From Macrostomum lignano (taxonomy: Eukaryota): a DNA stretch of 64,000 nucleotides. Where the stretch lies: contig NIVC01000719.1 of the NCBI GenBank assembly GCA_002269645.1, positions 300,020 through 364,019 on the forward strand, in the 5' to 3' direction. The notes beneath the pieces were generated by a model that had not been told where the DNA came from, did no database searches, and saw only the letters and a list, made by a program, of their open reading frames with translations. Position 1 is the first letter of the stretch, and each line of letters starts with the position of its first letter. The position numbers and the translations under genes were made by a program. Below are positions 14,853 through 40,016 of this stretch, one piece after another.

Positions 14853-14925
14853 CGACCACGCCAGGACTCGAACCTGGAATCTTCTGATCCGTAGTCAGAC
14901 GCGTTATCCATTGCGACACGCGGCC
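14853..14925 (-). tRNA. tRNA-Arg-ACG: tRNA-Arg(ACG) copy 1, G10U variant
   Basis: Minus strand GGCCGCGTGTCGCAATGGATAACGCGTCTGACTACGGATCAGAAGATTCCAGGTTCGAGTCCTGGCGTGGTCG; cloverleaf, anticodon ACG, T6 terminator; G10->U breaks a D-stem pair. Confidence 0.88.
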
Positions 14926-15108
14926 CTCGAAGTTTGGTAGTCCTTGAGCATTTCTTAATCATTTATGTGTTTGATCAGACGCCAATCTCTTAATGGGTAC
15001 GATTTCAGTAGTAATGATAGAGTATGTTAAATCTTTTTAGGAAAAACAAAATTTAGGAGAAATTTAAAAGAGGAAATTCGAGAAGGTCATTCAAATCTGA
15101 ATGCACCA

Positions 15109-15759
15109 CTGACACCTATTCCATGCCTCACTGACACCTATTCCAATGCCTCACTGGAGTCTATTCCAATGCCTCACTGGAGTCTATTCCAATGCCTCAC
15201 TGAAGTCTATTCCAATACTTCATTGAAGCCTATTCCAATGCCTCACTGATACCTATTCCAATGCCTCACTGACACCTATTCCAATGCCTCGCTGACACCT
15301 ATTCCAATGCCTCACTGACACCTATTCCAATGCCTCACTGACACCTATTCCAATGCAGCACTGACACCTATTCCAATGCCTCACTGACACCTATTCCAAT
15401 GCCTCACTGACACCTATTCCAATGCAGCATTGACACCTATTCCAATGCCTCACTGACACCTATTCCAATGCCTCACTGACACCTATTCCAATGCAGCACT
15501 GACACCTATTCCAATGCCTCACCGACACCTATTCCAATGCCTCACTGACACCTATTCCAATGCCTCACTGACACCTATTCCGATGCAGCATTGACACCTA
15601 TTCCAATGCCTCACTGACACCTATTCCAATGCCTCACTGACACCTATTCCAATGCAGCACTGACACCTATTCCAATGCCTCACTGACACCTATTCCAATG
15701 CCTCACTGACACCTATTCCAATGCCTCACTGACACCCATTCCAATGCAGCACTGACACC
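15109..15759. repeat. Satellite A block 1 (23-bp)
   Basis: ctgacacctattccaatgc(ctc/agc)a units between tRNA copies 1 and 2. Confidence 0.95.
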
Positions 15760-15844
15760 CACAGGATTTCTTGACAAATGACTATTCTGATATTTTTGTG
15801 GCCATATAAAAATACAAGTAAAATCGAAAAAATATATTTCAGAG

Positions 15845-15917
15845 CGACCACGCCAGGACTCGAACCTGGAATCTTCTGATCCGTAGTCAGACGCGTTATC
15901 CATTGCGCCACGCGGCC
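15845..15917 (-). tRNA. tRNA-Arg-ACG: tRNA-Arg(ACG) copy 2
   Basis: Canonical 73-nt GGCCGCGTGGCGCAATGG...CTACGGA...GGTTCGAGTCC...GGTCG with downstream T-run. Confidence 0.97.
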
Positions 15918-16157
15918 CTCGGCAGCAGGACTGCCTCAGTCTGTCAAATAAAATTGAAAATTACTAAATCTGATTCCCAGATTTATTTGACCTGCTGTCG
16001 TCAGCCAGAGCCGTCACAAAGTGGTTATGTGCGGCAGGTTTTCTGTATTCAGATATCTTCGTATACCTGCTGAACCTGTAGCATTGTCGCTTGCCTTAAT
16101 AACCTTTTCCATTCTCTCCATTGCAATACTAAATAGCTGACTGTGAGCATGATATGG

Positions 16158-16819
16158 GCCAGTCACACCTGATAATGATCAAGCCAGGGACACCTAATAA
16201 TGATCAGGCCAGTCACACCTGATAATGATCAAGCCAGTCACACCTGATAATGATCAAGCCAGTCACACCTGATAATGATCAGGCCAGTCACACCTGATAA
16301 TGATCAAGCCAGTCACACCTGATAATGATCAAGCCAGTCACACCTGATAATGATCAAGCCAGTCACACCTGATAATGATCAGGCCAGTCACACCTGATAA
16401 TGATCAAGCCAGTCACACCTGATAATGATCAAGCCAGTCACACCTGATAATGATCAAGCCAGTCACACCTGATAATGATCAAGCCAGTCACACCTGATAA
16501 TGATCAAGCCAGTCACACCTGATAATGATCAAGCCAGTCACACCTGATAATGATCAAGCCAGTCACACCTGATAATGATCAAGCCAGTCACACCTGATAA
16601 TGATCAAGCCAGTCACACCTGATAATGCTCAAGCCAGTCACACCTGACAATGATCAAGCCAGTCACACCTGATAACGATCAAGTCAGTCACACCTGATAA
16701 TGATCAAGCCAGTCACACCTGATAATGATCAAGCCAGTCACACCTGATAATGATCAAGCCAGTCACACCTGATAATGATCAAGCCAGTCACACCTGACAA
16801 TGATCAAGCCAGTCACACC
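16158..16819. repeat. Satellite B block 1 (25-bp)
   Basis: gccagtcacacctgataatgatcaa units, about 26 copies. Confidence 0.95.
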
Positions 16820-17269
16820 CACAGATACTAGAATAACTAGATAGGCCACTCGGCACATTTGCGTGCCAGCTACTTTCAGTTCAGTAGTAAGTTAAACAGA
16901 AGCATTTTAATGTATTCTTAAAGCCAGAGCTTATTTATTGGCTCTTACCCCCCCCCCAAGCTAATAAACCCTCAAACTCCTCATAGAACCTCTACCCCCG
17001 GCCCGCGACCTAATTTTATTACCTTCTTCGGTTGTTCCAGCCTAAATCTGCCTTGTACATTTCAGTGGCTTATGTATATTATGGCTGAACCAATTGGCAA
17101 GCTGTTTACGCCTGCAAGCTTGGGCTTCTAAACTTATCAAAGTCATTTCAGCTGCCTTATTCTTATAAAATAGCTTATGTATTCTTCTTTGCTACTGAAC
17201 TGAAAGTAGAAAGCTGTTTTGCCAAGTATAAATGCCAGAATGGCCCATCTAGTTATTCTAGTATCTGTG
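16820..17269. mobile_element. hAT-type MITE copy 1 (450 bp)
   Basis: TIR cacagatactagaataactagat(a/g)ggcca (28 of 29 match), 8-bp TSD gtcacacc on both sides, subterminal IR ctactttcagttcagtag. Confidence 0.92.
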
Positions 17270-17544
17270 GTCACACCTGATATTGATTGAGACAGTCAAC
17301 AAGTAAGCCATTTTAACAATTGAAAATTAATTGTATGAAATATTTTAGTAGTATTACATGCAATTTTTTCAATATATTTTATGAGTTCAACGTGAATTAA
17401 AAATCTTTTTTCTATCATTAGTTAATCGTACCTTTGAGCCTATAATTAAATAAATATATAATACACAGATACAACCAGTTTTTGCAGCTTATATCACAGC
17501 TTGTCAAAAGATGTTCACTCTTGATTACTCATTAAAGTAGTATC

Positions 17545-18495
17545 CTAGTTGCAGTTGTCAGCTGAGCACACTGAGCAGTCTCCATAGTTAGGCAAGGCGG
17601 TGAGGCTTGAGCAGCCGTCCTTGTCCAGGTAGCAGGCCCTGTAGTACTGAAAATGATTTTGGCCAATCATTTTATATTACTGCCACAAGTAGTAAGAGGT
17701 CGCAACAGGTCATGTGTTTAAACGGATTTAGACAAAACTGCAATTCGACACTGGTAGAATTCCCGTCATACCGATTTCCTGCCGCCGATGGCAACTGAGA
17801 ACCTGATGCAGTAGTCATAACCTGCCACACAGTTTACACTGGCTGCTCTGCCATCTGGCGATGCAGCGTTGGATGCTGAGTGACATCGAAGTCCAGCTGC
17901 GGGGTCTGGGCGAATCGGGGTATGTTGTGAGCTGTGACTGGGTGCTGACACTACCGTTCTGACTGTGACTGAGTGCTGTGGCTGTGACTGTGGCTGTGAC
18001 AGTGACAGTGACTGTGAATGTGACTGTGACACCGTGACTGTGACTGTGACACCGTGACTGTGACTGTGACACCGTGACTGTGACTGTGACACCGTGACTG
18101 TGACTGTGACACCGTGACTGTGACAATGCGCCTGTAAATGTTACTGTGACAGTGACAGTGACTGCGATTGTGACTATGATACTGACTGTGACTGTGACAC
18201 TGTGACTGTGACACCGTGACTGTGACAATGCGCCTGTAAATGTTACTGTGACAGTGACAGTGACTGCGACTGTGACTATGATACTGTGACTGTGACTGTG
18301 ACTGTGACTGTGACAGTGACTATGGCTGTGACAGCAGTCTCCCATGATGCAAACAATGTAAGTGACTCTTTTCATTTCACACTAACCTACAAGTATCTCT
18401 CAGAACTCAAATCATAACGCCAGATTACAAAACTCACCGATTGCATTGAAAGCTAGCATTAGCAGAATAGCAGAGCAGGCAGTTTGTCTCAGCAT
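17545..18495 (-). CDS. Secreted three-finger/Ly6(LU)-like 8-Cys protein, copy 1 (94 aa, 3 exons)
   Basis: Exons 18495-18438, 17896-17772, 17646-17545, GT-AG, phases 1 and 0. Translation MLRQTACSAILLMLAFNAI AGLRCHSASNAASPDGRAASVNCVAGYDYCIRFSVAIGGRKS YYRACYLDKDGCSSLTALPNYGDCSVCSADNCN*; same exon layout as the paralog at 40800-42055. Confidence 0.88.
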
Positions 18496-18736: not shown

Positions 18737-18809
18737 CGACCACGCCAGGACTCGAACCTGGAAGCTTCTGATCCGTAGTCAGACGCGTTATCCATTGCGC
18801 CACGCGGCC
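18737..18809 (-). tRNA. tRNA-Arg-ACG: tRNA-Arg(ACG) copy 3, A46C variant
   Basis: Variable loop reads AGCTT instead of AGATT; otherwise canonical; T5 terminator. Confidence 0.93.
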
Positions 18810-18992
18810 CTCGAAATTTGGTAGTCCTTGAGCATTCCTTAACGATTTATGTGTTTGATCAGACGCCAATCTCTTAATGGGTACGATTTCAGTAGTAATG
18901 ATAGAGTATGTTAAATCTTTTTAGGAAAAACTAAATTTAAGAGACATTTGAAAGAGGAAATTCGAAAAGGTCATCCAAATCTGAATGCACCA

Positions 18993-19708
18993 CTGACACC
19001 TATTCCATGCCTCACTGACACCTATTCCAATGCCTCACTGACACATATTCCAATGCCTCACTGACACCTATTCCATGCCTCACTGATACCTATTCCATGC
19101 CTCACTGACACCTATTCCAATGCCTCACTGACACATATTCCAATGCCTCACTGACACCTATTCCATGCCTCACTGACACCTATTCCAATGCCTCACTGAC
19201 ACCTATTCCAATGCAGCACTGACACCTATTCCAATGCCTCACTGATACCTATTCCAATGCCTCACTGACACATATTCCAATGCCTCACTGACACCTATTC
19301 CATGCCTCACTGGCACCTATTCCAATGCCTCACTGACACCTATTCCAATGCAGCACTGACACCTATTCCAATGCCTCACTGATACCTATTCCAATGCCTC
19401 ACTGACACCTATTCCAATGCAGCACTGACACCTATTCCAATGCAGCACTGACATCTATTCCAATGCAGCACTGACATCTATTCCAATGCCTCACTGACAC
19501 CTATTCCAATGCCTCACTGACACCTATTCCAATGCCTCGCTGACACCTATTCCAATGCCTCACTGACACCTATTCCAATGCCTCACTGACACCTATTCCA
19601 ATGCAGCACTGACACCTATTCCAATGCCTTACTGACATCTATTCCAATGCAGCACTGACATCTATTCCAATGCAGCACTGACACCCATTTCAATGCAGCA
19701 CTGACACC
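18993..19708. repeat. Satellite A block 2
   Basis: 22/23-bp ctgacacctattcca(a)tgcctca units. Confidence 0.95.
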
Positions 19709-20106: not shown

Positions 20107-20468
20107 GCCAGTCACACCTGATAATGATCAAGCCAGTCACACCTGATAATGATCAAGCCAGTCACACCTGATAATGATCAGGCCAGTCACACCTGATAAT
20201 GATCAAGCCAGTCACACCTGATAATGATCAAGCCAGTCACACCTGATAATGATCAGGCCAGTCGCACCTGATAATGATCAAGCCAGTCACACCTGATAAT
20301 GATCAAGCCAGTCACACCTGATAATGATCAAGCCAGTCACACCTGATAATGATCAAGCCAGTCACACCTGATAATGATCAAGCCAGTCACACCTGATAAT
20401 GATCAAGCCAGTCACACCTGATAATGCTCAAGCCAGTCACACCTGAATATGATCAAGCCAGTCACACC
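20107..20468. repeat. Satellite B block 2
   Basis: 25-bp units, about 14 copies. Confidence 0.95.
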
Positions 20469-20919
20469 CACAGATACTAGAATAACTAGATAGGCCACTC
20501 GGCACATTTGAGTGCCAGCTACTTTCAGTTCAGTAGTAAGTTAAACAGAAGCATTTTAATGTATTCTTAAAGCCAGAGCTTATTTATTGGCTCTTACCCC
20601 CCCCCCCAAGCTAATAAACCCTCAAACTCCTCATAGAACCTCTACCCCCGGCCCGCGACCTAATTTTATTACCTTCTTCGGTTGTTCCAGCCTAAATCTG
20701 CCTTGTACATTTCAGTGGCTTATGTATATTATGGCTGAACCAATTGGCAAGCTGTTTACGCCTGCAAGCTTGGGCTTCTAAACTTATCAAAGTCATTTCA
20801 GCTGCCTTATTCTTATAAAATAGCTTATGTATTCTTCTTTGCTACTGAACTGAAAGTAGAAAGCTGTTTTGCCAAGTATAAATGCCAGAATGGCCCATCT
20901 AGTTATTCTAGTATCTGTG
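20469..20919. mobile_element. hAT-type MITE copy 2
   Basis: Same TIRs and gtcacacc TSD as copy 1. Confidence 0.92.
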
Positions 20920-21194: not shown

Positions 21195-22145
21195 CTAGTT
21201 GCAGTTGTCAGCTGAGCACACTGAGCAGTCTCCATAGTTAGGCAAGGCGGTGAGGCTTGAGCAGCCGTCCTTGTCCAGGTAGCAGGCCCTGTAGTACTGA
21301 AAATGATTTTGGCCAATCATTTTATATTACTGCCACAAGTAGTAAGAGGTCGCAACAGGTCATGTGTTTAAACGGATTTAGACAAAACTGCAATTCGACA
21401 CTGGTAGAATTCCCGTCATACCGATTTCCTGCCGCCGATGGCAACTGAGAACCTGATGCAGTAGTCATAACCTGCCACACAGTTTACACTGGCTGCTCTG
21501 CCATCTGGCGATGCAGCGTTGGATGCTGAGTGACATCGAAGTCCAGCTGCGGGGTCTGGGCGAATCGGGGTATGTTGTGAGCTGTGACTGGGTGCTGACA
21601 CTACCGTTCTGACTGTGACTGAGTGCTGTGGCTGTGACTGTGGCTGTGACAGTGACAGTGACTGTGAATGTGACTGTGACACCGTGACTGTGACTGTGAC
21701 ACCGTGACTGTGACTGTGACACCGTGACTGTGACTGTGACACCGTGACTGTGACTGTGACACCGTGACTGTGACAATGCGCCTGTAAATGTTACTGTGAC
21801 AGTGACAGTGACTGCGATTGTGACTATGATACTGACTGTGACTGTGACACTGTGACTGTGACACCGTGACTGTGACAATGCGCCTGTAAATGTTACTGTG
21901 ACAGTGACAGTGACTGCGACTGTGACTATGATACTGTGACTGTGACTGTGACTGTGACTGTGACAGTGACTATGGCTGTGACAGCAGTCTCCCATGATGC
22001 AAACAATGTAAGTGACTCTTTTCATTTCACACTAACCTACAAGTATCTCTCAGAACTCAAATCATAACGCCAGATTACAAAACTCACCGATTGCATTGAA
22101 AGCTAGCATTAGCAGAATAGCAGAGCAGGCAGTTTGTCTCAGCAT
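21195..22145 (-). CDS. Secreted three-finger-like protein, copy 2
   Basis: Exact 3650-bp offset of copy 1; exons 22145-22088, 21546-21422, 21296-21195. Confidence 0.88.
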
Positions 22146-22386: not shown

Positions 22387-22459
22387 CGACCACGCCAGGA
22401 CTCGAACCTGGAAGCTTCTGATCCGTAGTCAGACGCGTTATCCATTGCGCCACGCGGCC
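22387..22459 (-). tRNA. tRNA-Arg-ACG: tRNA-Arg(ACG) copy 5, A46C variant
   Basis: As copy 3. Confidence 0.93.
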
Positions 22460-22642
22460 CTCGAAATTTGGTAGTCCTTGAGCATTCCTTAACGATTTAT
22501 GTGTTTGATCAGACGCCAATCTCTTAATGGGTACGATTTCAGTAGTAATGATAGAGTATGTTAAATCTTTTTAGGAAAAACTAAATTTAAGAGACATTTG
22601 AAAGAGGAAATTCGAAAAGGTCATCCAAATCTGAATGCACCA

Positions 22643-23358
22643 CTGACACCTATTCCATGCCTCACTGACACCTATTCCAATGCCTCACTGACACATATTC
22701 CAATGCCTCACTGACACCTATTCCATGCCTCACTGATACCTATTCCATGCCTCACTGACACCTATTCCAATGCCTCACTGACACATATTCCAATGCCTCA
22801 CTGACACCTATTCCATGCCTCACTGACACCTATTCCAATGCCTCACTGACACCTATTCCAATGCAGCACTGACACCTATTCCAATGCCTCACTGATACCT
22901 ATTCCAATGCCTCACTGACACATATTCCAATGCCTCACTGACACCTATTCCATGCCTCACTGGCACCTATTCCAATGCCTCACTGACACCTATTCCAATG
23001 CAGCACTGACACCTATTCCAATGCCTCACTGATACCTATTCCAATGCCTCACTGACACCTATTCCAATGCAGCACTGACACCTATTCCAATGCAGCACTG
23101 ACATCTATTCCAATGCAGCACTGACATCTATTCCAATGCCTCACTGACACCTATTCCAATGCCTCACTGACACCTATTCCAATGCCTCGCTGACACCTAT
23201 TCCAATGCCTCACTGACACCTATTCCAATGCCTCACTGACACCTATTCCAATGCAGCACTGACACCTATTCCAATGCCTTACTGACATCTATTCCAATGC
23301 AGCACTGACATCTATTCCAATGCAGCACTGACACCCATTTCAATGCAGCACTGACACC
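22643..23358. repeat. Satellite A block 3
   Basis: Same variant order as block 2 (3650-bp offset). Confidence 0.95.
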
Positions 23359-23443: not shown

Positions 23444-23516
23444 CGACCACGCCAGGACTCGAACCTGGAATCTTCTGATCCGTAGTCAGACGCGTTATCC
23501 ATTGCGCCACGCGGCC
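23444..23516 (-). tRNA. tRNA-Arg-ACG: tRNA-Arg(ACG) copy 6
   Basis: Canonical sequence with terminator. Confidence 0.97.
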
Positions 23517-23756: not shown

Positions 23757-24118
23757 GCCAGTCACACCTGATAATGATCAAGCCAGTCACACCTGATAAT
23801 GATCAAGCCAGTCACACCTGATAATGATCAGGCCAGTCACACCTGATAATGATCAAGCCAGTCACACCTGATAATGATCAAGCCAGTCACACCTGATAAT
23901 GATCAGGCCAGTCGCACCTGATAATGATCAAGCCAGTCACACCTGATAATGATCAAGCCAGTCACACCTGATAATGATCAAGCCAGTCACACCTGATAAT
24001 GATCAAGCCAGTCACACCTGATAATGATCAAGCCAGTCACACCTGATAATGATCAAGCCAGTCACACCTGATAATGCTCAAGCCAGTCACACCTGAATAT
24101 GATCAAGCCAGTCACACC
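23757..24118. repeat. Satellite B block 3
   Basis: 25-bp units. Confidence 0.95.
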
Positions 24119-24567
24119 CACAGATACTAGAATAACTAGATAGGCCACTCGGCACATTTGAGTGCCAGCTACTTTCAGTTCAGTAGTAAGTTAAACAGAA
24201 GCATTTTAATGTATTCTTAAAGCCAGAGCTTATTTATTGGCTCTTACCCCCCCCCAAGCTAATAAACCCTCAAACTCCTCATAGAACCTCTACCCCCGGC
24301 CCGCGACCTAATTTTATTACCTTCTTCGGTTGTTCCAGCCTAAATCTGCCTTGTACATTTCAGTGGCTTATGTATATTATGGCTGAACCAATTGGCAAGC
24401 TGTTTACGCCTGCAAGCTTGGGCTTCTAAACTTATCAAAGTCATTTCAGCTGCCTTATTCTTATAAAATAGCTTATGTATTCTTCTTTGCTACTGAACTG
24501 AAAGTAGAAAGCTGTTTTGCCAAGTATAAATGCCAGAATGGCCCATCTAGTTATTCTAGTATCTGTG
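24119..24567. mobile_element. hAT-type MITE copy 3
   Basis: Same TIRs; right junction has an extra gtcactg before gtcacacc. Confidence 0.9.
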
Positions 24568-24850: not shown

Positions 24851-25963
24851 CTAGTTGCAGTTGTCAGCTGAGCACACTGAGCAGTCTCCATAGTTAGGCA
24901 AGGCGGTGAGGCTTGAGCAGCCGTCCTTGTCCAGGTAGCAGGCCCTGTAGTACTGAAAATGATTTTGGCCAATCATTTTATATTACTGCCACAAGTAGTA
25001 AGAGGTCGCAACAGGTCATGTGTTTAAACGGATTTAGACAAAACTGCAATTCGACACTGGTAGAATTCCCGTCATACCGATTTCCTGCCGCCGATGGCAA
25101 CTGAGAACCTGATGCAGTAGTCATAACCTGCCACACAGTTTACACTGGCTGCTCTGCCATCTGGCGATGCAGCGTTGGATGCTGAGTGACATCGAAGTCC
25201 AGCTGCGGGGTCTGGGCGAATCGGGGTATGTTGTGAGCTGTGACTGGGTGCTGACACTACCGTTCTGACTGTGACTGAGTGCTGTGGCTGTGACTGTGGC
25301 TGTGACAGTGACAGTGACTGTGAATGTGACTGTGACACCGTGACTGTGACTGTGACACCGTGACTGTGACTGTGACACCGTGACTGTGACTGTGACACCG
25401 TGACTGTGACTGTGACACCGTGACTGTGACTGTGACACCGTGACTGTGACTGTGACACCGTGACTGTGACTGTGACACCGTGACTGTGACAATGCGCCTG
25501 TAAATGTTACTGTGACAGTGACAGTGACTGCGATTGTGACTATGATACTGACTGTGACTGTGACACTGTGACTGTGACACCGTGACTGTGACAATGCGCC
25601 TGTAAATGTTACTGTGACAGTGACAGTGACTGCGATTGTGACTATGATACTGACTGTGACTGTGACACTGTGACTGTGACACCGTGACTGTGACAATGCG
25701 CCTGTAAATGTTACTGTGACAGTGACAGTGACTGCGACTGTGACTATGATACTGTGACTGTGACTGTGACTGTGACTGTGACAGTGACTATGGCTGTGAC
25801 AGCAGTCTCCCATGATGCAAACAATGTAAGTGACTCTTTTCATTTCACACTAACCTACAAGTATCTCTCAGAACTCAAATCATAACGCCAGATTACAAAA
25901 CTCACCGATTGCATTGAAAGCTAGCATTAGCAGAATAGCAGAGCAGGCAGTTTGTCTCAGCAT
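24851..25963 (-). CDS. Secreted three-finger-like protein, copy 3
   Basis: Exons 25963-25906, 25202-25078, 24952-24851; same protein as copy 1, longer intron-1 repeat. Confidence 0.88.
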
Positions 25964-26204: not shown

Positions 26205-26277
26205 CGACCACGCCAGGACTCGAACCTGGAAGCTTCTGATCCGTAGTCAGACGCGTTATCCATTGCGCCACGCGGCC
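26205..26277 (-). tRNA. tRNA-Arg-ACG: tRNA-Arg(ACG) copy 7, A46C variant
   Basis: As copy 3. Confidence 0.93.
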
Positions 26278-26460
26278 CTCGAAATTTGGTAGTCCTTGAG
26301 CATTCCTTAACGATTTATGTGTTTGATCAGACGCCAATCTCTTAATGGGTACGATTTCAGTAGTAATGATAGAGTATGTTAAATCTTTTTAGGAAAAACT
26401 AAATTTAAGAGACATTTGAAAGAGGAAATTCGAAAAGGTCATCCAAATCTGAATGCACCA

Positions 26461-27873: not shown

Positions 27874-27946
27874 CGACCACGCCAGGACTCGAACCTGGAA
27901 TCTTCTGATCCGTAGTCAGACGCGTTATCCATTGCGCCACGCGGCC
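27874..27946 (-). tRNA. tRNA-Arg-ACG: tRNA-Arg(ACG) copy 8
   Basis: Canonical sequence with terminator. Confidence 0.97.
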
Positions 27947-28548: not shown

Positions 28549-28997
28549 CACAGATACTAGAATAACTAGATAGGCCACTCGGCACATTTGAGTGCCAGCT
28601 ACTTTCAGTTCAGTAGTAAGTTAAACAGAAGCATTTTAATGTATTCTTAAAGCCAGAGCTTATTTATTGGCTCTTACCCCCCCCCAAGCTAATAAACCCT
28701 CAAACTCCTCATAGAACCTCTACCCCCGGCCCGCGACCTAATTTTATTACCTTCTTCGGTTGTTCCAGCCTAAATCTGCCTTGTACATTTCAGTGGCTTA
28801 TGTATATTATGGCTGAACCAATTGGCAAGCTGTTTACGCCTGCAAGCTTGGGCTTCTAAACTTATCAAAGTCATTTCAGCTGCCTTATTCTTATAAAATA
28901 GCTTATGTATTCTTCTTTGCTACTGAACTGAAAGTAGAAAGCTGTTTTGCCAAGTATAAATGCCAGAATGGCCCATCTAGTTATTCTAGTATCTGTG
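28549..28997. mobile_element. hAT-type MITE copy 4
   Basis: Same TIRs and gtcacacc TSD. Confidence 0.92.
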
Positions 28998-29273: not shown

Positions 29274-30332
29274 CTAGTTGCAGTTGTCAGCTGAGCACAC
29301 TGAGCAGTCTCCATAGTTAGGCAAGGCGGTGAGGCTTGAGCAGCCGTCCTTGTCCAGGTAGCAGGCCCTGTAGTACTGAAAATGATTTTGGCCAATCATT
29401 TTATATTACTGCCACAAGTAGTAAGAGGTCGCAACAGGTCATGTGTTTAAACGGATTTAGACAAAACTGCAATTCGACACTGGTAGAATTCCCGTCATAC
29501 CGATTTCCTGCCGCCGATGGCAACTGAGAACCTGATGCAGTAGTCATAACCTGCCACACAGTTTACACTGGCTGCTCTGCCATCTGGCGATGCAGCGTTG
29601 GATGCTGAGTGACATCGAAGTCCAGCTGCGGGGTCTGGGCGAATCGGGGTATGTTGTGAGCTGTGACTGGGTGCTGACACTACCGTTCTGACTGTGACTG
29701 AGTGCTGTGGCTGTGACTGTGGCTGTGACAGTGACAGTGACTGTGAATGTGACTGTGACACCGTGACTGTGACTGTGACACCGTGACTGTGACTGTGACA
29801 CCGTGACTGTGACTGTGACACCGTGACTGTGACTGTGACACCGTGACTGTGACTGTGACACCGTGACTGTGACAATGCGCCTGTAAATGTTACTGTGACA
29901 GTGACAGTGACTGCGATTGTGACTATGATACTGACTGTGACTGTGACACTGTGACTGTGACACCGTGACTGTGACAATGCGCCTGTAAATGTTACTGTGA
30001 CAGTGACAGTGACTGCGATTGTGAACATGATACTGACTGTGACTGTGACACCGTGACTGTGACAATGCGCCTGTAAATGTTACTGTGACAGTGACAGTGA
30101 CTGCGACTGTGACTATGATACTGTGACTGTGACTGTGACTGTGACTGTGACAGTGACTATGGCTGTGACAGCAGTCTCCCATGATGCAAACAATGTAAGT
30201 GACTCTTTTCATTTCACACTAACCTACAAGTATCTCTCAGAACTCAAATCATAACGCCAGATTACAAAACTCACCGATTGCATTGAAAGCTAGCATTAGC
30301 AGAATAGCAGAGCAGGCAGTTTGTCTCAGCAT
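29274..30332 (-). CDS. Secreted three-finger-like protein, copy 4
   Basis: Exons 30332-30275, 29625-29501, 29375-29274; same protein as copy 1. Confidence 0.88.
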
Positions 30333-30573: not shown

Positions 30574-30646
30574 CGACCACGCCAGGACTCGAACCTGGAA
30601 GCTTCTGATCCGTAGTCAGACGCGTTATCCATTGCGCCACGCGGCC
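30574..30646 (-). tRNA. tRNA-Arg-ACG: tRNA-Arg(ACG) copy 9, A46C variant
   Basis: As copy 3. Confidence 0.93.
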
Positions 30647-30829
30647 CTCGAAATTTGGTAGTCCTTGAGCATTCCTTAACGATTTATGTGTTTGATCAGA
30701 CGCCAATCTCTTAATGGGTACGATTTCAGTAGTAATGATAGAGTATGTTAAATCTTTTTAGGAAAAACAAAATTTAAGAGACATTTGAAAGAGGAAATTC
30801 GAAAAGGTCATCCAAATCTGAATGCACCA

Positions 30830-31546
30830 CTGACACCTATTCCATGCCTCACTGACACCTATTCCAATGCCTCACTGACACCTATTCCAATGCCTCACTG
30901 ACACCTATTCCATGCCTCACTGATACCTATTCCAATGCCTCACTGACACCTATTCCAATGCAGCACTGACACCTATTCCAATGCCTCACTGATACCTATT
31001 CCAATGCCTCACTGACACCTATTCCAATGCCTCACTGACACCTATTCCAATGCCTCACTGACACATATTCCAATGCCTCACTGACACCTATTCCATGCCT
31101 CACTGACACCTATTCCAATGCCTCACTGACACCTATTCCAATGCAGCACTGACACCTATTCCAATGCCTCACTGATACCTATTCCAATGCCTCACTGACA
31201 CATATTCCAATGCCTCACTGACACCTATTCCATGCCTCACTGACACCTATTCCAATGCAGCACTGACACCTATTCCAATGCCTCACTGACACCTATTCCA
31301 ATGCCTCACTGACACCTATTCCAATGCAGCACTGACACCTATTCCAATGCAGCACTGACACCTATTCCAATGCAGCACTGACATCTATTCCAATGCCTCA
31401 CTGACACCTATTCCAATGCCTCACTGACACCTATTCCAATGCCTCACTGACACCTATTCCAATGCAGCACTGACACCTATTCCAATGCAGCACTGACACC
31501 TATTCCAATGCAGCACTGACACCCATTTCAATGCAGCACTGACACC
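30830..31546. repeat. Satellite A block 5
   Basis: 22/23-bp units. Confidence 0.95.
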
Positions 31547-31631: not shown

Positions 31632-31704
31632 CGACCACGCCAGGACTCGAACCTGGAATCTTCTGATCCGTAGTCAGACGCGTTATCCATTGCGCCACGC
31701 GGCC
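31632..31704 (-). tRNA. tRNA-Arg-ACG: tRNA-Arg(ACG) copy 10
   Basis: Canonical; 5' flank type shared only with copy 13. Confidence 0.97.
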
Positions 31705-31916
31705 CTCGGCATTTGGCAGTCCTTGAGCACGGATTTCTAATTTTCTTTTCAAAATCACAGCTGCTGCTAAGCATGTTTGATCACGCGGCCTGCATGTGAA
31801 TTTGCGAGGCTTGGCTGGGAATGTTGAAATCGGAAACGACTTTAAGAGTCTCTTGGTAAGCAGCCATTTTTAAAGGCAACAACGGCATTTCACTTTTGTC
31901 CATTGATACTTGCTCT

Positions 31917-32980
31917 AATGTCCACCGACACCAACTTTAATGTCCACCGACTCAAACTTTAATGTCCACCGACACCAACTTTAATGTCCACCGACTCCAA
32001 CTTTAATGTCCACCGATACCTAGTTAAATGTCCACCGGCCGACACCAACTTTAATGTCCACCGACACCTACTTTAATGTCCACCGACACCTACTTTAATG
32101 TCCACCGACTCCAACTTTAATGTCCACCGACACCTACTTTAGTGTCCACCGACACCTACTTTAATGTCCACCGACTCCAACTTTAATGTCCACCGACTCC
32201 AACTTTAATGTCCACCGACACCAACCTTAATGTCCACCGACACCAACTTTAATGTCCACCGACACCTACTTTAATGTCCACCGACACCTACTTTAATGTC
32301 CACCGACACCTACTTTGATGTCCACCGACACCAACTTTAATGTCCACCGACACCTACTTTAATGTCCACCGACACCTACTTTAATGTCCACCGACACCTA
32401 CTTTAATGTCCACCGACACCTACTTTAATGTCCACCGACACCAACTTTAATGTCCACCGACACCAACTTTAATGTCCACCGACACCTACTTTAATGTCCA
32501 CCGACACCAACTTTAATGTCCACCGACTCCAACTTTAATGTCCACCGACACCAACTTTAATGTCCACCGACTCCAACTTTAATGTCCACCGACACCAACT
32601 TTAATGTCCACCGACTCCAACTTTAATGTCCACCGACACCAACTTTAATGTCCACCGACACCAACTTTAATGTCCACCGACACCTACTTTAATGTCCACC
32701 GACACCTACTTTAATGTCCACCGATACCTACTTTAATGTCCACCGACACCAACTTTAATGTCCACCGACACCTACTTTAATGTCCACCGACACCTACTTT
32801 AATGTCCACCGACACCTACTTTAATGTCCACCGACACCTACTTTAATGTCCACCGACACCTACTTTAATGTCCACCGACACCAACTTTAATGTCCACCGA
32901 CACCAACTTTTATGTCCACCGACACCTACTTTAATGTCCACCGACACCTACTTTGATGTCCACCGACACCTACTTTAATA
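31917..32980. repeat. Satellite C (22-bp), about 48 copies
   Basis: aatgtccaccgacacc(a/t)acttt units. Confidence 0.95.
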
Positions 32981-33116
32981 TCTAGTAACACCCACTTTAA
33001 AGTCCCACTGGCGAGAAAGGTCTTTGGCCTAACCCGCCCTATACTCAAACTATGACGCTTTTGACTTTCCTACAGCGAGAGCTCGAGTTCCTGCTAAGCG
33101 GCTGACTTCTAAAATT

Positions 33117-35474: not shown

Positions 35475-36061
35475 CTCACTGACACCTATTCCAATGCCTC
35501 ACCGACACCTATTTCAATGCCTCACTGACGCCTATTTCAATGCCTCACTGACACCTATTTCAATGCCTCACTGACGCCTATTTCAATGCCTCACTGACGC
35601 CTATTTCAATGCCTCACTGACACCTATTTCAATGCCTCACTGACGCCTATTTCAATGCCTCACTGACACCTATTTCAATGCCTCACTGACACCTATTCCA
35701 ATGCCTCACTGACGCCTATTTCAATGCCTCACTGACGCCTATTTCAATGCCTCACTGACACCTATTCCAATGCCTCACTGACACCTATTCCAATGCCTCA
35801 CTGACACCTATTCCAATGCCTCACTGACACCTATTCCAATGCCTCACTGACACCTATTCCAATGCCTCACTGACACCTATTCCAATGCCTCACTGACACC
35901 TATTCCAATACCTCACTGACACCTATTCCAATGCCTCACTGACACCAATTCCAATGCCTCACTGACACCTATTCCAATGCCTCACTGACACCTATTCCAA
36001 TACCTCACTGACACCTATTCCAATGCCTCACTGACACCTATTCCAATGCATTACTGACACC
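35475..36061. repeat. Satellite A block 6
   Basis: 23-bp units with their own variants (gacgcc, atttcaat). Confidence 0.95.
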
Positions 36062-36136: not shown

Positions 36137-36209
36137 CGACCACGCCAGGACTCGAACCTGGAATCTTCTGATCCGTAGTCAGACGCGTTATCCATTGCGC
36201 CACGCGGCC
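36137..36209 (-). tRNA. tRNA-Arg-ACG: tRNA-Arg(ACG) copy 11
   Basis: Canonical; diverged 3' flank. Confidence 0.97.
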
Positions 36210-36447: not shown

Positions 36448-36838
36448 GCCAGTCACACCTGATAATGATCAAGCCAGGGACACCTAATAATGATCAGGCC
36501 AGTCACACCTGATAATGCTCAAGCCAGTCACACCTGATAATGCTCAAGCCAGTCACACCTGATAATGATCAAGCCAGTCACACCCGATAATGATCAAGCC
36601 AGTCACACCCGATAATGATCAAGCCAGTCACACCTGATAATGATTAAGCCAGTCACACCTGATAATGATCAAGCCAGTCACACCTGATAATGATCAAGCC
36701 AGGGACACCTGATAATGATCAAGCCAGGGACACCTGATAATGATCAAGCCAGGGACACCTGATAATGATCAAGCCAGTCACACCTGATAATGATCAAGCC
36801 GGTCACACCTGATAATGATCAAGCCAGTCACACCTGAT
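36448..36838. repeat. Satellite B block 5 (MITE-free)
   Basis: 25-bp units ending in a single gtcacacc at 36827-36834 followed by tgatattgattgagac. Confidence 0.95.
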
Positions 36839-37097
36839 ATTGATTGAGACAGTCAACAAGTAAGCCATTTTAACAATTGAAAATTAATTGTATGAAATAT
36901 TTTAGTAGTACATGCAATTTTTTCAATATATTCTTTGAGTTCAACGTGAATTAAAAATCTTTTTTCTATCATTAGTTAATCGTACCTTAAAGCCTACAAT
37001 AAATAAATATATAATACACAGATACAACCAGTTTTTGCAGCTTATATCAAAGCTTGTCAAAAGATGTTCACTCTTGATTACTCATTAAAGTAGTATC

Positions 37098-38110
37098 CTA
37101 GTTGCAGTTGTCAGCTGAGCACACTGAGCAGTCTCCATAGTTAGGCAAGGCGGTGAGGCTTAAGCAGCCGTCCTTGTCCAGGTAGCAGGCCCTGTAGTAC
37201 TGAAAATGTTTTTGGCCAATCAATTTTCTATTTAATTTTATAATATAAACTTCAGTTTCACTACTGCCACAAGTAGTAAGAGGTCGCGACATGTGTTTAA
37301 ACGGATTTAGACAAAACTGCAATTCGACACTGGTAGAATTCACGTCATACCGATTTCCTGCCGCCGATGGCAACTGAGAACCTGATGCAGTAGTCATAAC
37401 CTGCCACACAGTTTACACTGGCTGCTCTGCCGTCTGGCGATGGAGCGTTGGATGCTGAGTGACATCGAAGTCCAGCTGCGGGGTCTGGGCGAATCGGGGT
37501 ATGTTGTGAGCTGTGACTGGGTGCTGAAACTACCGTTCTGACTGTGACTGAGTGCTGTGGCTGTGACTGTGGCTGTGACAGTGACAGTGACTGTGAATGT
37601 GACTGTGACACCGTGACTGTGACTGTGACACCGTGACTGTGACTGTGACACCGTGACTGTGACTGTGACACCGTGACTGTGACTGTGACACCGTGACTGT
37701 GACTGTGACACCGTGACTGTGACAATGCGCCTGTAAATGTTACTGTGACAGTGACAGTGACTGCGATTGTGACTATGATACTGACTGTGACTGTGACACT
37801 GTGACTGTGACACCGTGACTGTGACACCGTGACTGTGACACCGTGACTGTGACTGTGACACCGTGACTGTGACAATGCGCCTGTAATTGTTAATGTGACA
37901 GTGACAGTGACTGCAATTGTGACTATGATACTGACTGTGACTGTGACAGCAGTCTCCCATGATGCAAACAATGTAAGTGACTCTTTTCATTTCACACTAA
38001 CCTACAAGTATCTCTCAGAACTCAAATCATAACGCCAGATTACAAAACTCACCGATTGCATTGAAAGCTAGCATTAGCAGAATAGCAGAGCAGGCAGTTT
38101 GTCTCAGCAT
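37098..38110 (-). CDS. Secreted three-finger-like protein, copy 5 (diverged)
   Basis: Exons 38110-38053, 37475-37351, 37199-37098; two amino-acid differences from copies 1-4 (NAPSP, GCLSL). Confidence 0.88.
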
Positions 38111-38350
38111 TCTGTGGCTCTTCTGTCTAAACTTTTCTGTCCGCGGAGAATAGCGAATAAAGAATGCCAGTTTCGCTGTCAGAACCTTAAATAGCTGGGG
38201 CGCTCAGCTTGAACCAACCAGTACGCCAGTACTGCATTGTGCGTGCGTACGGCATATAGACAGAACTTCCACATCTGATGTACAACTGCAGTCAGAGGTG
38301 CAATATTGAACTCTGAGATTACTATTTACAAAAATATTAATAGCTCAGAG

Positions 38351-38423
38351 CGACCACGCCAGGACTCGAACCTGGAATCTTCTGATCCGTAGTCAGACGC
38401 GTTATCCATTGCGCCACGCGGCC
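38351..38423 (-). tRNA. tRNA-Arg-ACG: tRNA-Arg(ACG) copy 12
   Basis: Canonical A46 although positionally equivalent to the A46C copies. Confidence 0.97.
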
Positions 38424-38604
38424 CTCGAAATTTGGTAGTCCTTGAGCATTCCTTAACGATTTATGTGTTTGATCAGACACCAATCCTTTAGTGGATAAGA
38501 TTTCAGTAGTATTGATGGAGCATGTTAAATCATTTTGAGGAAAAACTGAATTCCGGCGAAATTCGAAAGAGGAAATTCGAGGTCATACAAATCTGAATGC
38601 CACT

Positions 38605-39401
38605 TATTCCAATGCCTCACTGACATTCCAATACCTCACTGACACCTATTCCAATGCCTCACCGACACCTATTCCAATGCCTCACTGACACCTATTCCAA
38701 TGCCTCACTGACACCTATTCCATTGCCTCACTGACACCTATTCCAATGCCTCACTGACACCTATTCCAATGCCTCACTGACACCTATTCCAATGCCTCAC
38801 TGACACCTATTCCAATGCCTCACTGACACCAATTCCAATGCCTCACTGACACCTATTCCAATGCCTCACTGACACCTATTCCAATGCCTCACTGACATCC
38901 CAATACCTCACTGACACCTATTCCAATGCCTTGTCGACACTTATTCCAATGCCTCACTGACACCTATTCCATTGCCTCACTGACACCTATTCCAATGCCT
39001 CGCTGACACCTATTCCAATGCAGCACTGACACCGATTCCAATGCCTCACTGACACCTATTCCAATGCCTCACTGACACCAATTCCAATGCCTCACTGACA
39101 CCTATTCCAATGCCTCACTGACACCAATTCCAATGCCTCACTGACACCTATTCCAATGCCTCACTGACACCTATTCCAATGCCTCACTGACACCTATTCC
39201 AATGCCTCACTGACACCTATTCCAATGCCTCACTGACACCTATTCCAATGCCTCACTGACACCCTTTCCAATTCCTCACTGACACCTATTCCAATGCCTC
39301 ACTGACACCCTTTCCAATTCCTCACTGACACCTATTCTAATGTCTCACTGAAACCTATTCCAATGCCTCACTGACACCTATTCCAATGCAGCACTGACAC
39401 C
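38605..39401. repeat. Satellite A block 7
   Basis: 23-bp units. Confidence 0.95.
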
Positions 39402-39487
39402 CACAGGATTTCTTGACAAATGACTATTCTGATATTTTTGTGGCCATATAAAAATACAAGTAAAATCGAAAAAAATATATCTCAGAG

Positions 39488-39560
39488 CGACCACGCCAGG
39501 ACTCGAACCTGGAATCTTCTGATCCGTAGTCAGACGCGTTATCCATTGCGCCACGCGGCC
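39488..39560 (-). tRNA. tRNA-Arg-ACG: tRNA-Arg(ACG) copy 13
   Basis: Canonical sequence with terminator. Confidence 0.97.
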
Positions 39561-39943
39561 CTCGGCATTTGGCAGTCCTTGAGCACGGATTTCTAATTTT
39601 CTTTTCAAAATCACAGCTGCTGCCAATCATGTTTGAACACGAGGCCTGCATGTGAATTTGCGAGGCTTGGCTGGGAATGTTGAAATCGGAAACGATTTCA
39701 AGAGGCTCTTAGAGAACACTCGTTTTTAAAGGCAACAACAGCATTTCACTTTTGTCTAATGTCTCTAATGTCCACCGATAACTACTTTAATTTCCACCGA
39801 CACCTACTTTATTGTCCTCTGACACCAACTATAATGTCCACTTTAGTGTCACATCTTTTACACTTGACGAGACATTAATGGTAGTTCTATTTTGTCTTAA
39901 AATGTAAAAAACATTTAAAAAATGTAAGGAAAAAAATTTTAAA

Positions 39944-40016
39944 CGACCACGCCAGGACTCGAACCTGGAATCTTCTGATCCGTAGTCAGACGCGTTATCC
40001 ATTGCGCCACGCGGCC
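39944..40016 (-). tRNA. tRNA-Arg-ACG: tRNA-Arg(ACG) copy 14
   Basis: Canonical; unique flanks; T7 terminator. Confidence 0.97.

Follow-up and report, generated by a model that had tools for sequence, protein, structure and literature searches.

A probable lineage-specific tandem segmental duplication within a cluster of tRNA-Arg(ACG) genes and minisatellites in Macrostomum lignano

How did a protein-coding gene come to be repeated inside a cluster of tRNA genes, and should its multiplication be read as a benefit? The question is raised by a 64,000-nt stretch of the Macrostomum lignano assembly Mlig_3_7 (GCA_002269645.1, contig NIVC01000719.1), the whole of which is called the window here. A stretch of this contig, reached by way of the neighbouring PP2C protein, matches the window with 100% identity at offset 776. 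Positions 14853 to 40016 of the window contain 14 tRNA-Arg(ACG) genes, each identified by both ARAGORN and Rfam RF00005 (49 to 59 bits). We conclude, with a probability of about 0.75, that the locus is a lineage-specific tandem segmental duplication within a cluster of tRNA-Arg(ACG) genes and minisatellites. The tRNA genes, with the classes of their flanks, are as follows.

14853..14925, minus strand, t1, terminal copy, Rfam 49.1 bits
15845..15917, minus strand, t2, canonical, beta-p flanks (chimeric)
18737..18809, minus strand, t3, A46C, alpha-q flanks, Rfam 55.4 bits
19794..19866, minus strand, t4, canonical, beta-p flanks
22387..22459, minus strand, t5, A46C, alpha-q flanks
23444..23516, minus strand, t6, canonical, beta-p flanks
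26205..26277, minus strand, t7, A46C, alpha-q flanks
27874..27946, minus strand, t8, canonical, beta-p flanks
30574..30646, minus strand, t9, A46C, alpha-q flanks (parental type)
31632..31704, minus strand, t10, canonical, gamma-p flanks (parental type), upstream limit of the young array
36137..36209, minus strand, t11, canonical, beta-p' flanks, old module
38351..38423, minus strand, t12, canonical (A46), alpha-q flanks
39488..39560, minus strand, t13, canonical, gamma-p flanks
39944..40016, minus strand, t14, canonical, unique delta-s flanks

An earlier note on this DNA had listed 14 co-oriented tRNA-Arg(ACG) genes, and this count stands, but only 9 of the 14 have the canonical sequence. Four have the substitution A46C, which is confined to the young alpha-q tRNAs and is absent from t12 and from the equivalent tRNAs at two sister loci (see below). 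One, t1, has G10U, which breaks the D-stem, and its flanks are a chimeric pairing of alpha (5') and r (3'). The p' flank of t11 is about 76% identical to p.

Four young modules, which start at 14852, 18736, 22386, and 26204 and are 3884, 3650, 3818, and 4369 bp long (modules 1 to 4), share the order tRNA, satA (a 23-mer), tRNA, satB (a 25-mer), hAT-like MITE, and three-exon gene. A fifth, old module (tRNAs at 36137, 38351, and 39488) is ~1.9% diverged and has no MITE. When the three VNTRs are taken out, 2163 to 2170 bp remain in every young module, which places the length variation of the four modules in the VNTRs. The offset between modules 2 and 3 is exactly 3650 bp, and the two share an unbroken identity of 3658 bp. 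The earlier description of this part of the locus is thus borne out in its module order, its four repeats of 3.65 to 4.4 kb, its older diverged module at 36.1 to 39.6 kb, its assignment of the length differences to VNTRs, and its 3650-bp offset. The repeats and mobile elements are as follows.

15100..15759, satA 23-mer minisatellite (AATGCCTCACTGACACCTATTCC), 28.7 copies, module 1
16158..16819, satB 25-mer minisatellite (GCCAGTCACACCTGATAATGATCAA), 26.5 copies, module 1
16820..17269, hAT-like MITE copy 1
18984..19708, satA, 31.7 copies, module 2, identical to the array in module 3
20107..20468, satB, 14.5 copies, module 2
20469..20919, hAT-like MITE copy 2, 451 bp, TIR CACAGATACTAGAATAACTAGAT, 8-bp target-site duplication GTCACACC at 20461-20468 and 20920-20927
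22634..23358, satA, 31.7 copies, module 3
23757..24118, satB, 14.5 copies, module 3
24119..24567, hAT-like MITE copy 3
26452..27788, satA, 58.7 copies, module 4
28187..28548, satB, 14.5 copies, module 4
28549..28997, hAT-like MITE copy 4
30821..31546, satA, 31.7 copies, upstream boundary block B1
31916..33005, satC 22-mer (TAATGTCCACCGACACCAACTT), 49 copies, kin to satA
35475..36061, satA, 25.5 copies, old module, downstream of t11
36448..36855, satB, 16.3 copies, old module, MITE site empty
38601..39401, satA, 35 copies, old module
39766..39841, satC remnant, 3.5 copies

The unique segments of the four young modules are 99.5 to 100% identical. Over the ~1.3 kb of such sequence that was compared they show no substitution, and what differences remain between units are homopolymer or VNTR lengths. 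Comparison of the young modules with the old module or with the sister loci, in contrast, gives 24 to 26 substitutions in ~1.3 kb. Each of the four modules has its own combination of VNTR lengths and the exact identities are staggered, modules 1 and 2 sharing the intron VNTR and modules 2 and 3 sharing satA and satB. In all 4 young units the MITE is present, its TIRs perfect and its insertion marked by an 8-bp target-site duplication.

The genes within the modules, and a related gene beside them, are as follows.

17545..18495, minus strand, Ly6-like gene copy 1, ATG to stop; exons 18495-18438, 17905 (or 17896)-17772, and 17646-17545; intron-1 TGACTG VNTR 17960-18333
21195..22145, minus strand, copy 2; exons 22145-22088, 21555 (alternative 21546)-21422, and 21296-21195; intron-1 VNTR 21610-21983; TATA-like TATTTAA 22228-22222
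24851..25963, minus strand, copy 3; exons 25963-25906, 25211 (or 25202)-25078, and 24952-24851; intron-1 VNTR 25266-25801
29274..30332, minus strand, copy 4; exons 30332-30275, 29634 (or 29625)-29501, and 29375-29274; intron-1 VNTR 29689-30171
37098..38110, minus strand, copy 5, old module, intact; exons 38110-38053, 37484 (or 37475)-37351, and 37199-37098
40800..42055, minus strand, sixth, diverged paralogue, 145 aa; exons 42055-42004, 41388-41258, and 41054-40800

The exons and GT-AG splice sites are exact in the four young copies and intact in copy 5, which differs from the young copies at three nucleotides (A31P, S74L, and one synonymous change). The gene copies at both sister loci are intact as well. 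The CDS divergence of copy 5 and the sister-locus copies is 0.35 to 1.05%, versus about 1.7 to 1.9% overall. Each young gene has its own TATA promoter ~160 bp downstream of a tRNA gene on the same strand (t3 in the case of copy 1), and this spacing recurs throughout the array, in the old module, and at both sister loci. The TGACTG hexamer VNTR lies in intron 1 and is noncoding. The five modules lie within the range first described for the array, but the sixth paralogue is just outside it; this paralogue shares the three-exon plan of the array copies, has an (AACT)n microsatellite in its first intron, and ends in a hydrophobic C-terminal tail resembling a GPI-anchor signal. The part of the array for which annotation was fetched (window positions 777 to 23048) contains no annotated gene models. 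At one sister locus, GenBank model Mlig009825g1, derived from a genome-guided RNA-seq assembly, has the three-exon splicing that was predicted, with an exon 2 acceptor 9 nt upstream of the alternative acceptor; this makes 21555 the RNA-supported choice in copy 2. The prediction that the gene is transcribed and spliced is therefore upheld for a sister locus rather than for the array copies themselves.

The array gene probably encodes an orphan, putatively secreted, Ly6/uPAR-like protein, as judged from sequence and structure predictions that are individually weak. Pfam QVR (Ly6/uPAR-like) matches a young copy at an E value of 6e-4 and paralogue 6 at 0.048, both below threshold (Pfam score, 21.2 bits; cut-off, 27.3), and in both proteins the match ends at the last profile position, aligned to the ...CN that closes the domain. 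The only three PDB profile matches are all snake three-finger toxins, and the top Foldseek matches are almost all three-finger proteins (best E value, 0.4). The AlphaFold2 pLDDT of the protein is 42 to 50. The three-exon plan is typical of LY6 genes (PMC10421932), and the adjoining paralogue ends in a tail of GPI type. A search of 1.84 billion representative proteins yielded no homologue from any species other than M. lignano. The earlier claim of one three-finger gene per unit thus holds for intact genes with GT-AG sites in five copies, but the assignment of the fold is below threshold throughout; we infer both the three-finger fold and secretion.

In order to place the array in time, we compared it with two loci of the same assembly, L001 (NIVC01000596.1) and L003 (NIVC01000595.1), which match the window collinearly between PP2C and a 39-mer array. 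Each has a single module with three tRNAs and no MITE; the MITE is absent from the old module and L001, both of which have the empty site, and from L003. The sister loci differ from the window by 1.7%, in agreement with the 1.9 to 2.4% SNP divergence reported for M. lignano subgenomes (PMC10733133), and from each other by 0.26%. The four-copy array is derived relative to the sister loci, and, of the three near-identical genome copies in this neopolyploid, only one has the amplification. Because L001 and L003 are sisters, they provide a single independent outgroup, so that a tRNA-bounded indel at the PP2C-side end can be read either way, as sequence gained by the window lineage or lost by the sister lineage. 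The novelty first ascribed to the array was overstated: what is present is a segmental duplication of four copies, and the neopolyploid genome around it is rich in repeats, with 15% tandem repeat and 180 Mb in duplicated blocks of 95% identity or more (PMC5730564).

The flanks of the tRNA genes show where the units were joined. The pairings at the sister loci are gamma-p, alpha-q, and beta-r, while the window has the chimeric pairing beta-p four times, at internal tRNAs, and the chimeric pairing alpha-r once, at the terminal tRNA. Flank identity shifts between about 97 to 100% and about 9 to 60% right at the tRNA, and the switch of flank class falls inside ~82 bp shared around the tRNA, in the gene itself or at most about 80 bp downstream. 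Because the flank class switches exactly at tRNA genes, the array appears to have been made by recombination at tRNAs or at tRNA-satellite blocks, which supports the proposal that tRNA genes served as recombination handles. At one SNP the internal p-flank agrees with the upstream block, and t2 retains the other allele; this single site would place the young crossover in an interval of ~158 bp that includes the tRNA. The alpha 5' flank of t1 is 5.7% diverged and difficult to date, and beta-p may be older than assumed, given the beta-p'-satA end of the old module.

From these comparisons we infer an order of events and a mechanism. A small Ly6/uPAR-like family, with the GPI-tailed paralogue as its earliest member, would have given rise to a truncated secreted form whose last residues are the ...CN at the close of the three-finger domain. 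This form would have duplicated once, at about the time the genome copies diverged (about 1.9%). A hAT-like MITE would then have entered satB and the promoter-proximal tRNA gained A46C, followed very recently by an increase from one to four of the 3.65- to 4.4-kb unit [gene, MITE, satB, tRNA, satA, tRNA]. This increase may have occurred by homologous unequal exchange, or by replication template switching, between direct repeats flanking the gene, namely, the identical 73-bp tRNA genes and the 1.1- to 1.2-kb tRNA-satA-tRNA blocks that they bound. Once there were two units, whole-unit unequal crossing-over and VNTR slippage could have produced four units with differing VNTR lengths.

Copy number and perfect identity both come from Mlig_3_7, a 2017 PacBio assembly (Canu v1.4, Pilon polishing) in which REAPR rates only 63.95% of bases as error-free and 36% of the length lies in chimeric scaffolds. 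Polishing with multi-mapping short reads can wipe out true differences between copies. An assembly with these properties, and units that differ only in homopolymer or VNTR lengths, would fit a locus with truly one or two MITE-bearing units, over-expanded by Canu and made uniform by Pilon from noisy, pooled, hexaploid-like PacBio data. We consider this unlikely: the four VNTR-length combinations are distinct and the exact identities staggered, a unit of this size would fit inside a typical PacBio read, at 130x coverage, and the other two genome copies are separately assembled without the MITE and so are not the source of extra units. The succession of beta-p tRNA, satA, alpha-q tRNA, and gene requires a minimum of two real units. 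It is still less probable that an old array was homogenized by gene conversion and unequal exchange. Identical units with differing VNTRs are also seen in Entamoeba tRNA arrays (PMC2652664), but only one unit is present at each sister locus, and the old module, only 4 to 8 kb from the young units, has escaped homogenization. The MITE and A46C are common to the four units and occur nowhere else, which is explained most simply by one founder and recent copying. The MITE itself might be taken as the cause, through alternative transposition, since it is present with perfect TIRs and a target-site duplication in each young unit and absent from every single-copy relative, and hAT elements are reported to be able to produce tandem duplications (PMC3744419). 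However, it is internal and complete in all units, with the same target-site duplication each time; MITE count equals gene count; and the array ends and chimeric junctions are at tRNA/satA blocks, with none at MITE termini. We regard this origin as very improbable.

A different explanation concerns purpose rather than origin. The array might be a selected cassette that raises the dosage of a secreted three-finger "effector," with tRNAs that provide handles for recombination and also act as Pol III/TFIIIC chromatin boundaries insulating every unit. The boundary activity of tDNA is established in other organisms, e.g., in the human 1q23.3 tRNA VNTR (PMC4041453). Junctions at tRNA genes, ORFs, splice sites, and promoters that are intact in all copies, a CDS more conserved than its surroundings, and the constant spacing from tRNA to TATA would all fit. 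In yeast, however, tRNA genes near Pol II promoters repress rather than protect them, so any effect in the flatworm could have either sign. In addition, zero substitutions between copies make dN/dS inapplicable, the promoter-proximal tRNA of each young unit has the derived A46C and the terminal tRNA is damaged, and neutral duplications and tandem repeats abound genome-wide. We find this reading as a whole improbable.

A recent tandem segmental duplication has parallels in known systems. As in Ly6/uPAR clusters, a signal-peptide exon precedes two exons that encode the cysteine-rich domain, and there are eight cysteines, a C-terminal ...CN, and a local tandem family; as in snake three-finger toxins, which expanded once the GPI-anchor region had been lost (PMC10421932; PMC4839075), a GPI-tailed member stands beside truncated, putatively secreted members that multiplied. 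Unlike that family, the flatworm protein has C-x2-C where a CC doublet is usual before the last Cys, its Pfam match is sub-threshold, it has no detectable homologue in other species, and its amplified unit includes Pol III genes. Entamoeba arrays, which hold almost all of that organism's tRNA genes in >10% of the genome, likewise have head-to-tail units uniform within an isolate, with tRNAs parted by tandem repeats whose number is the main variation, but they contain Pol III genes only (tRNA and some 5S) (PMC2652664); the flatworm has 4 to 5 units, one tRNA species, and a Pol II protein gene per unit plus a MITE. The human 1q23.3 repeat (7.3-kb unit, 9 to 43 copies) is also a kilobase-scale tandem repeat with tRNA genes and varying copy number, but its unit has no reported protein-coding gene, and its proposed boundary role is based on CTCF binding (PMC4041453), while the flatworm array is known from sequence and is seen to vary in copy number only between genome copies of one line. 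Direct repeats flanking a tandemly amplified gene, with hybrid repeats at the junctions, resemble amplification by NAHR or template switching. In yeast, where tRNA genes act as replication-fork barriers, they flank the GAP1 locus, and such stalling is discussed as a stimulus of CNV (PMC11790251 and references therein); the recombining repeats there are Ty LTRs near tRNA genes, while the flatworm switch of flank class lies in the tRNA gene or within ~80 bp downstream.

We treat the amplification as neutral, or as unproven with respect to benefit. Its outcome is four identical, predicted-secreted Ly6-like genes and eight extra tRNA-Arg genes, with the derived A46C in half of the tRNA copies gained.

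Both ARAGORN and the Rfam model RF00005 find 14 tRNA-Arg(ACG) copies (t1 to t14 in coordinate order) between window positions 14853 and 40016, all of them on the minus strand. Each forms a cloverleaf with the anticodon ACG, and the RF00005 scores range from 49.1 to 58.8 bits, compared with a gathering score of 29. Nine of the 14 are canonical and identical (GGCCGCGTGGCGCAATGGATAACGCGTCTGACTACGGATCAGAAGATTCCAGGTTCGAGTCCTGGCGTGGTCG), four carry A46C and lie directly upstream of the young copies of the embedded protein-coding gene, and one, the terminal copy at 14853-14925, carries G10U. The A box and B box of the internal Pol III promoter, located by inspection, are TGGCGCAATGG and GGTTCGAGTCC, and a run of T5 to T7 is found at most ~20 nt downstream of the tRNA in every class of 3' flank that we distinguish (p, q, r, and s). 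Because the A and B boxes are present and a T run follows each copy, the window tRNAs are, as judged from their sequence, genes and not SINE heads. An origin as tRNA-derived SINEs is ruled out by full-length, canonical cloverleaves that have their own terminators. A literature search found no report on nuclear tRNA organisation in Macrostomum.

Features of the window (window positions)
777-2660, minus strand: annotated proprotein convertase gene of the furin-like subtilisin (S8) type, 3' part (positions 1-1884 of L002, the fetched part of this contig)
10777-13048, plus strand: PP2C phosphatase gene, GenBank Mlig015578g1, 378 aa
14852, 18736, 22386, and 26204: starts of the four young modules M1 to M4, with lengths of 3884, 3650, 3818, and 4369 bp
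36137, 38351, and 39488: tRNAs of the old (fifth) module, ~1.9% diverged and without the MITE; its gene is at 37098-38110
40800-42055, minus strand: paralogue 6, a sixth, unannotated gene of 145 aa beside the array, just outside the interval of the earlier note
15100-15759, 31916-33005, 11832-12609, 54022-54664, 55429-55949, and 34587-35008: examples of minisatellites with a (C)TGACAC(C) core, on one or the other strand

The earlier note had described a regular module of tRNAs, satellites, and a gene, and this structure is borne out by the tRNA calls, the satellite interleaving, and the presence of four near-identical units plus the old module. Tandem Repeats Finder and motif searches show that a 23-mer satellite (satA), a 25-mer satellite (satB), and a TGACTG-based VNTR are regularly interleaved. 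When these three VNTRs are subtracted from M1 to M4, 2163 to 2170 bp are left per module. The unique parts of the four modules are 99.5 to 100% identical, with 0 substitutions over the ~1.3 kb compared, and M2 and M3 are exactly identical over 3658 bp at an offset of 3650.

Several other repeats were noted in and around the cluster. Six or 7 of the 26 distinct minisatellite families in the window have the (C)TGACAC(C) core on either strand, compared with a chance expectation of ~0.3; shared ancestry of the families, or a motif conducive to array formation, may be the cause. The satellites satA and satC (a 22-mer) are clearly related. A 15-mer satellite, CCCTGGTGCTAAAGC, flanks the tRNA/Ly6 cluster at two sites, one to either side, with 33 kb between them (window 14239-14516 and 47681-48140), and window 48600-48938 contains interstitial, degenerate telomere-like hexamers (CCTAAT and CCCTAA variants) in an 18-bp higher-order unit. 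The convertase stretch is dense in 31-, 37-, and 42-mer minisatellites. The PP2C gene has a 42-mer VNTR of 18.5 copies in an apparent intron, though one frame is open throughout. A search for a gene in the unique spacer at 33.0 to 34.6 kb gave only short, unconvincing open reading frames, and no gene is called there at the sister loci.

L002, retrieved by way of the adjacent PP2C gene, is on NIVC01000719.1 of GCA_002269645.1 and matches the window with 100% identity at a fixed offset of 776 bases. Two other loci of the same assembly, L001 (NIVC01000596.1) and L003 (NIVC01000595.1), have the same neighborhood as the window: PP2C, the unique flank, the module, satC, the unique 1.6 kb, and a 39-mer array. 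Each has a single module with three tRNAs and no MITE. Divergence is 1.7% between these sister loci and the window and 0.26% between L001 and L003, which are therefore sister copies and serve as a single independent outgroup. The old module is as far from the young units as it is from the sister loci (~1.9% in both cases). Among the window and sister tRNAs compared, A46C is present only in the young units. In the coding sequence, the old module and the sister loci differ from the young units at only 1 to 3 of 285 nt, which is below the divergence of the surroundings and hints at constraint. Diagnostic differences are A31P and S74L in the gene of the old module and a synonymous change at position 105 in the sister loci. 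The 42-mer VNTR of PP2C is also found at the sister loci with different copy numbers, and L003 has a 30-mer variant of the CCCTGGTGCTAAAGC satellite at the site that matches window 14239-14516. The 39-mer satellite has ~11 copies in the window (34587-35008) versus >80 to 125 in the sister loci (L001 1334-6255; L003 8535-11727+). Because L001 1-1334, beyond this satellite, has no match anywhere in the window, the loci diverge structurally past that point.

The copy number and identity of the array could in part be a product of assembly or polishing. Mlig_3_7, which represents the DV1 line, is a Canu v1.4 assembly of PacBio reads (130x) polished with Pilon (PMC5730564), and where reads map to more than one copy, this polishing could have erased genuine differences. 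The genome itself is one in which tandem repeats make up 15% and duplicated, nonrepetitive blocks that are at least 95% identical amount to 180 Mb (PMC5730564), and DV1 carries three near-identical genome copies, S, L1, and L2, with SNP differences of 1.9 to 2.4% (PMC10733133). Against an artefact, the four units present four combinations of VNTR lengths, and their exact identities are staggered, M1 and M2 sharing the intron VNTR and M2 and M3 sharing satA and satB. In addition, the other genome copies were separately assembled and lack the MITE, and the unit is shorter than a typical PacBio read. L001 is not a collapsed version of the window locus; it is 1.7% diverged, lacks the MITE, and is present in the same assembly as NIVC01000719.1. 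These observations argue that the array is real, with the exact copy number and the perfect identity to be read as those of the assembly.

In the young units, the MITE is bounded by terminal inverted repeats that match perfectly over at least 23 bp, and its target site duplication is 8 bp long (GGTGTGAC/GTCACACC). It is a putative nonautonomous element of the hAT superfamily, a placement made by the length of the target site duplication only. Its empty site is present both in L001 and in the old module, and because of this the insertion is placed before the amplification. Duplication mediated by the MITE is ruled out, as its ends coincide with no unit boundary.

To classify the junctions, we compared the 120 nt to either side of each tRNA and distinguished four 5' and four 3' flank classes. 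Of the 5' classes, alpha follows satA, beta follows satB, gamma follows satC, and delta is the fourth; of the 3' classes, p leads into satA, q into the gene promoter, and r to the PP2C-side flank, with s as the fourth. In L001 and L003, the tRNA order is gamma-p, alpha-q, beta-r, which is the parental arrangement. In the window, the order is gamma-p (t10), alpha-q (t9), repeated beta-p/alpha-q, and then beta-p (t2) and alpha-r (t1), so that the beta-p and alpha-r combinations are chimeric. Sequence common to the flank classes extends no more than 6 nt upstream of the tRNA and 3 nt downstream, so that the points of exchange are within the tRNA gene or immediately adjacent to it. The internal p flanks have T at position 79, the allele of the upstream block, while t2 has C, like t13. 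Based on this one SNP, the young crossover would fall within a ~158-bp interval that contains the tRNA. At the PP2C-side end, comparison of the window with the sisters, which are one effective outgroup, shows an indel of p flank, satA, alpha flank, and tRNA that is bounded by tRNAs. The old module ends in beta-p' (p' being p-like), which suggests that the beta-p combination is possibly old.

The locus thus has head-to-tail units, single-copy relatives, and hybrid junction repeats, as in repeat-mediated (NAHR-type) tandem duplication. Recombination between direct tRNA repeats would be the simplest account of these junctions, whichever the polarity of the indel. Once two units were present, unequal exchange between whole units, together with VNTR slippage, would have generated the remaining units and their lengths. 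The proposal that the tRNA genes act as recombination handles therefore stands, since the flank class switches at tRNAs to give the chimeric beta-p and alpha-r contexts. The further suggestions of the earlier note, a dosage-amplification cassette, chromatin boundaries formed by the tRNA genes, and an effector-like product, stay hypothetical. At yeast GAP1, the mediating repeats are LTRs (PMC11790251), whereas in the flatworm array tRNA genes are found instead.

Each genome copy has its own damaging changes in the PP2C-side terminal tRNA, with G10U in the window, C66U in L001 (11582-11655), and A34G plus A58U in L003 (3526-3599), where the anticodon becomes GCG and the B box is hit. Between L001 and L003 this tRNA differs at 3 of 73 nt, versus 0.26% elsewhere, which suggests a decaying redundant copy, raised mutation at a transcribed tRNA gene, or both.

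The embedded gene, which is transcribed from the minus strand in our prediction, consists of three exons. The first encodes a hydrophobic leader resembling a signal peptide, and the TGACTG VNTR lies in the intron that follows it (intron 1). Exons 2 and 3 specify a cysteine-rich domain with the C terminus ...DNCN and a stop codon immediately after it, and the predicted mature protein has 74 residues. A TATTTAA box is located ~160 bp past the preceding tRNA gene and ~80 nt before the ATG, and the predicted transcription start is ~42 nt before the ATG. At a sister locus, the GenBank protein model Mlig009825g1 (P0001), which derives from genome-guided RNA-seq and transcriptome assembly, agrees with our prediction in the donor of exon 1 and in the junction between exons 2 and 3. 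It places the acceptor of exon 2 at a site 9 nt farther upstream than first chosen, adding the residues D-P-A. The splicing predicted earlier is thus upheld by a three-exon, RNA-seq-derived model at the sister locus, except for this acceptor, and the evidence that the window gene is transcribed and spliced as predicted is indirect. The TGACTG hexamer array, which is open in one frame, was also considered as coding sequence, but it is removed by splicing in the RNA-derived model, and there are stops in the domain frame. The part of the array within L002 (14853-23048 of window 777-23048) has no GenBank gene model, and an identical protein is annotated at the single-copy sister locus. None of the five or six Ly6-like genes of the window is represented in the protein collection that was searched, and a literature search for the identifier Mlig009825 gave no match. 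The missing models are probably the result of filtering; the assembly authors dropped transcripts that overlapped repeat annotations ahead of submission (PMC5730564).

The earlier note had called the product a three-finger protein. The product is probably a three-finger (Ly6/uPAR) protein, each line of evidence being weak alone. The young copy matches Pfam QVR (PF17064, Quiver Ly6/uPAR-like) with 21.2 bits (E = 6e-4), below the cutoff of 27.3, and the match extends to the final position of the profile. Other subthreshold matches are those of paralogue 6 (15.1 bits) and a Toxin_cobra-type match (13.3 bits). LU domain spacing calls for 8 to 10 cysteines ending in ...C-x(4)-CN; the protein has eight, all invariant between paralogues, with an N-terminal L-[RK]-C and a C-terminal CxxCxxDNCN, and it lacks the usual adjacent CC doublet. 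The exon plan, a signal peptide exon followed by two domain exons, and the intron phases are common to all six genes, and LY6 genes have the same three-exon arrangement (PMC10421932). AlphaFold2 gave low confidence, with a pLDDT of 41.9 from a single sequence (an unusable model) and 50.0 from a 3-sequence alignment. The 12 top Foldseek matches in the PDB are all three-finger toxins or Lynx2/PSCA, at a weak best E value of 0.4 and TM-scores of 0.4 to 0.6, and the rest of the top 50 are mostly three-finger-fold proteins, uPAR, SLURP-2, and TEX101 among them (E values of 0.4 or worse). Searching the PDB with the protein sequence gave no match, while a profile of the window paralogues gave only three, all snake three-finger toxins with weak E values of 0.7 to 8. 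Among 1.84 billion representative proteins, phmmer found the M. lignano protein and, apart from two spurious repeat proteins, nothing else, so that no homologue outside M. lignano was detected.

The strongest contextual clue to Ly6 identity is paralogue 6, which is 48% identical to the young copy and shares its exon plan and its invariant cysteines. Intron 1 of paralogue 6 contains an (AACT)n microsatellite. A word-indexed search of a 5.8-billion-protein collection found no matching protein. Paralogue 6 has a 52-residue C-terminal tail whose last ~25 residues are hydrophobic, the usual form of a GPI anchor signal, from which we infer GPI attachment. Because paralogue 6 has this tail and the young copies stop at CN, the amplified gene has the appearance of a membrane-anchored Ly6 gene that was truncated and whose product became secreted. 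SLURPs and snake toxins followed the same route, being secreted forms derived from anchored Ly6 proteins (PMC10421932).

Tandem tRNA arrays in Entamoeba (PMC2652664) and at human 1q23.3 (PMC4041453) contain no protein-coding gene. Since the tandem tRNA arrays known so far hold none, a unit that combines tRNAs with a Pol II gene is unusual. An array of that type is defined by a many-copy, head-to-tail unit of Pol III genes and spacer repeats only; the window has four young units and one old one, each with a Pol II gene and the young ones with the MITE. Given four copies, segmental duplication is the better term, two tRNA genes happening to be part of the unit. A far broader reading, which we consider improbable, is that tRNA-minisatellite-tRNA blocks are a general, recurrent engine of local amplification in Macrostomum, in which fork-stalling tRNAs recombine and multiply the enclosed Pol II gene, so that one subgenome would have a four-fold dose of a newly secreted Ly6 protein and the tRNA ~160 bp upstream would tune or insulate its promoter.

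The value of the locus lies in annotation, since GenBank lacks a model for five or six Ly6-like genes, and in a tidy case study that leaves current understanding unchanged. It is a well-resolved, recent, natural gene amplification whose preamplification state is preserved in sister genome copies, and its junction anatomy places exchange at 73-bp tRNA genes and the satellite blocks that they bound. Because transgenic M. lignano can be made, the conserved placement of a tRNA gene just upstream of a Pol II promoter offers a way to study tDNA position effects in an animal. For this flatworm, the locus appears to follow a familiar Ly6 route, in which the membrane anchor is lost and the secreted form is then multiplied, and it shows the onset of gene dose differences among the genome copies of a neopolyploid.
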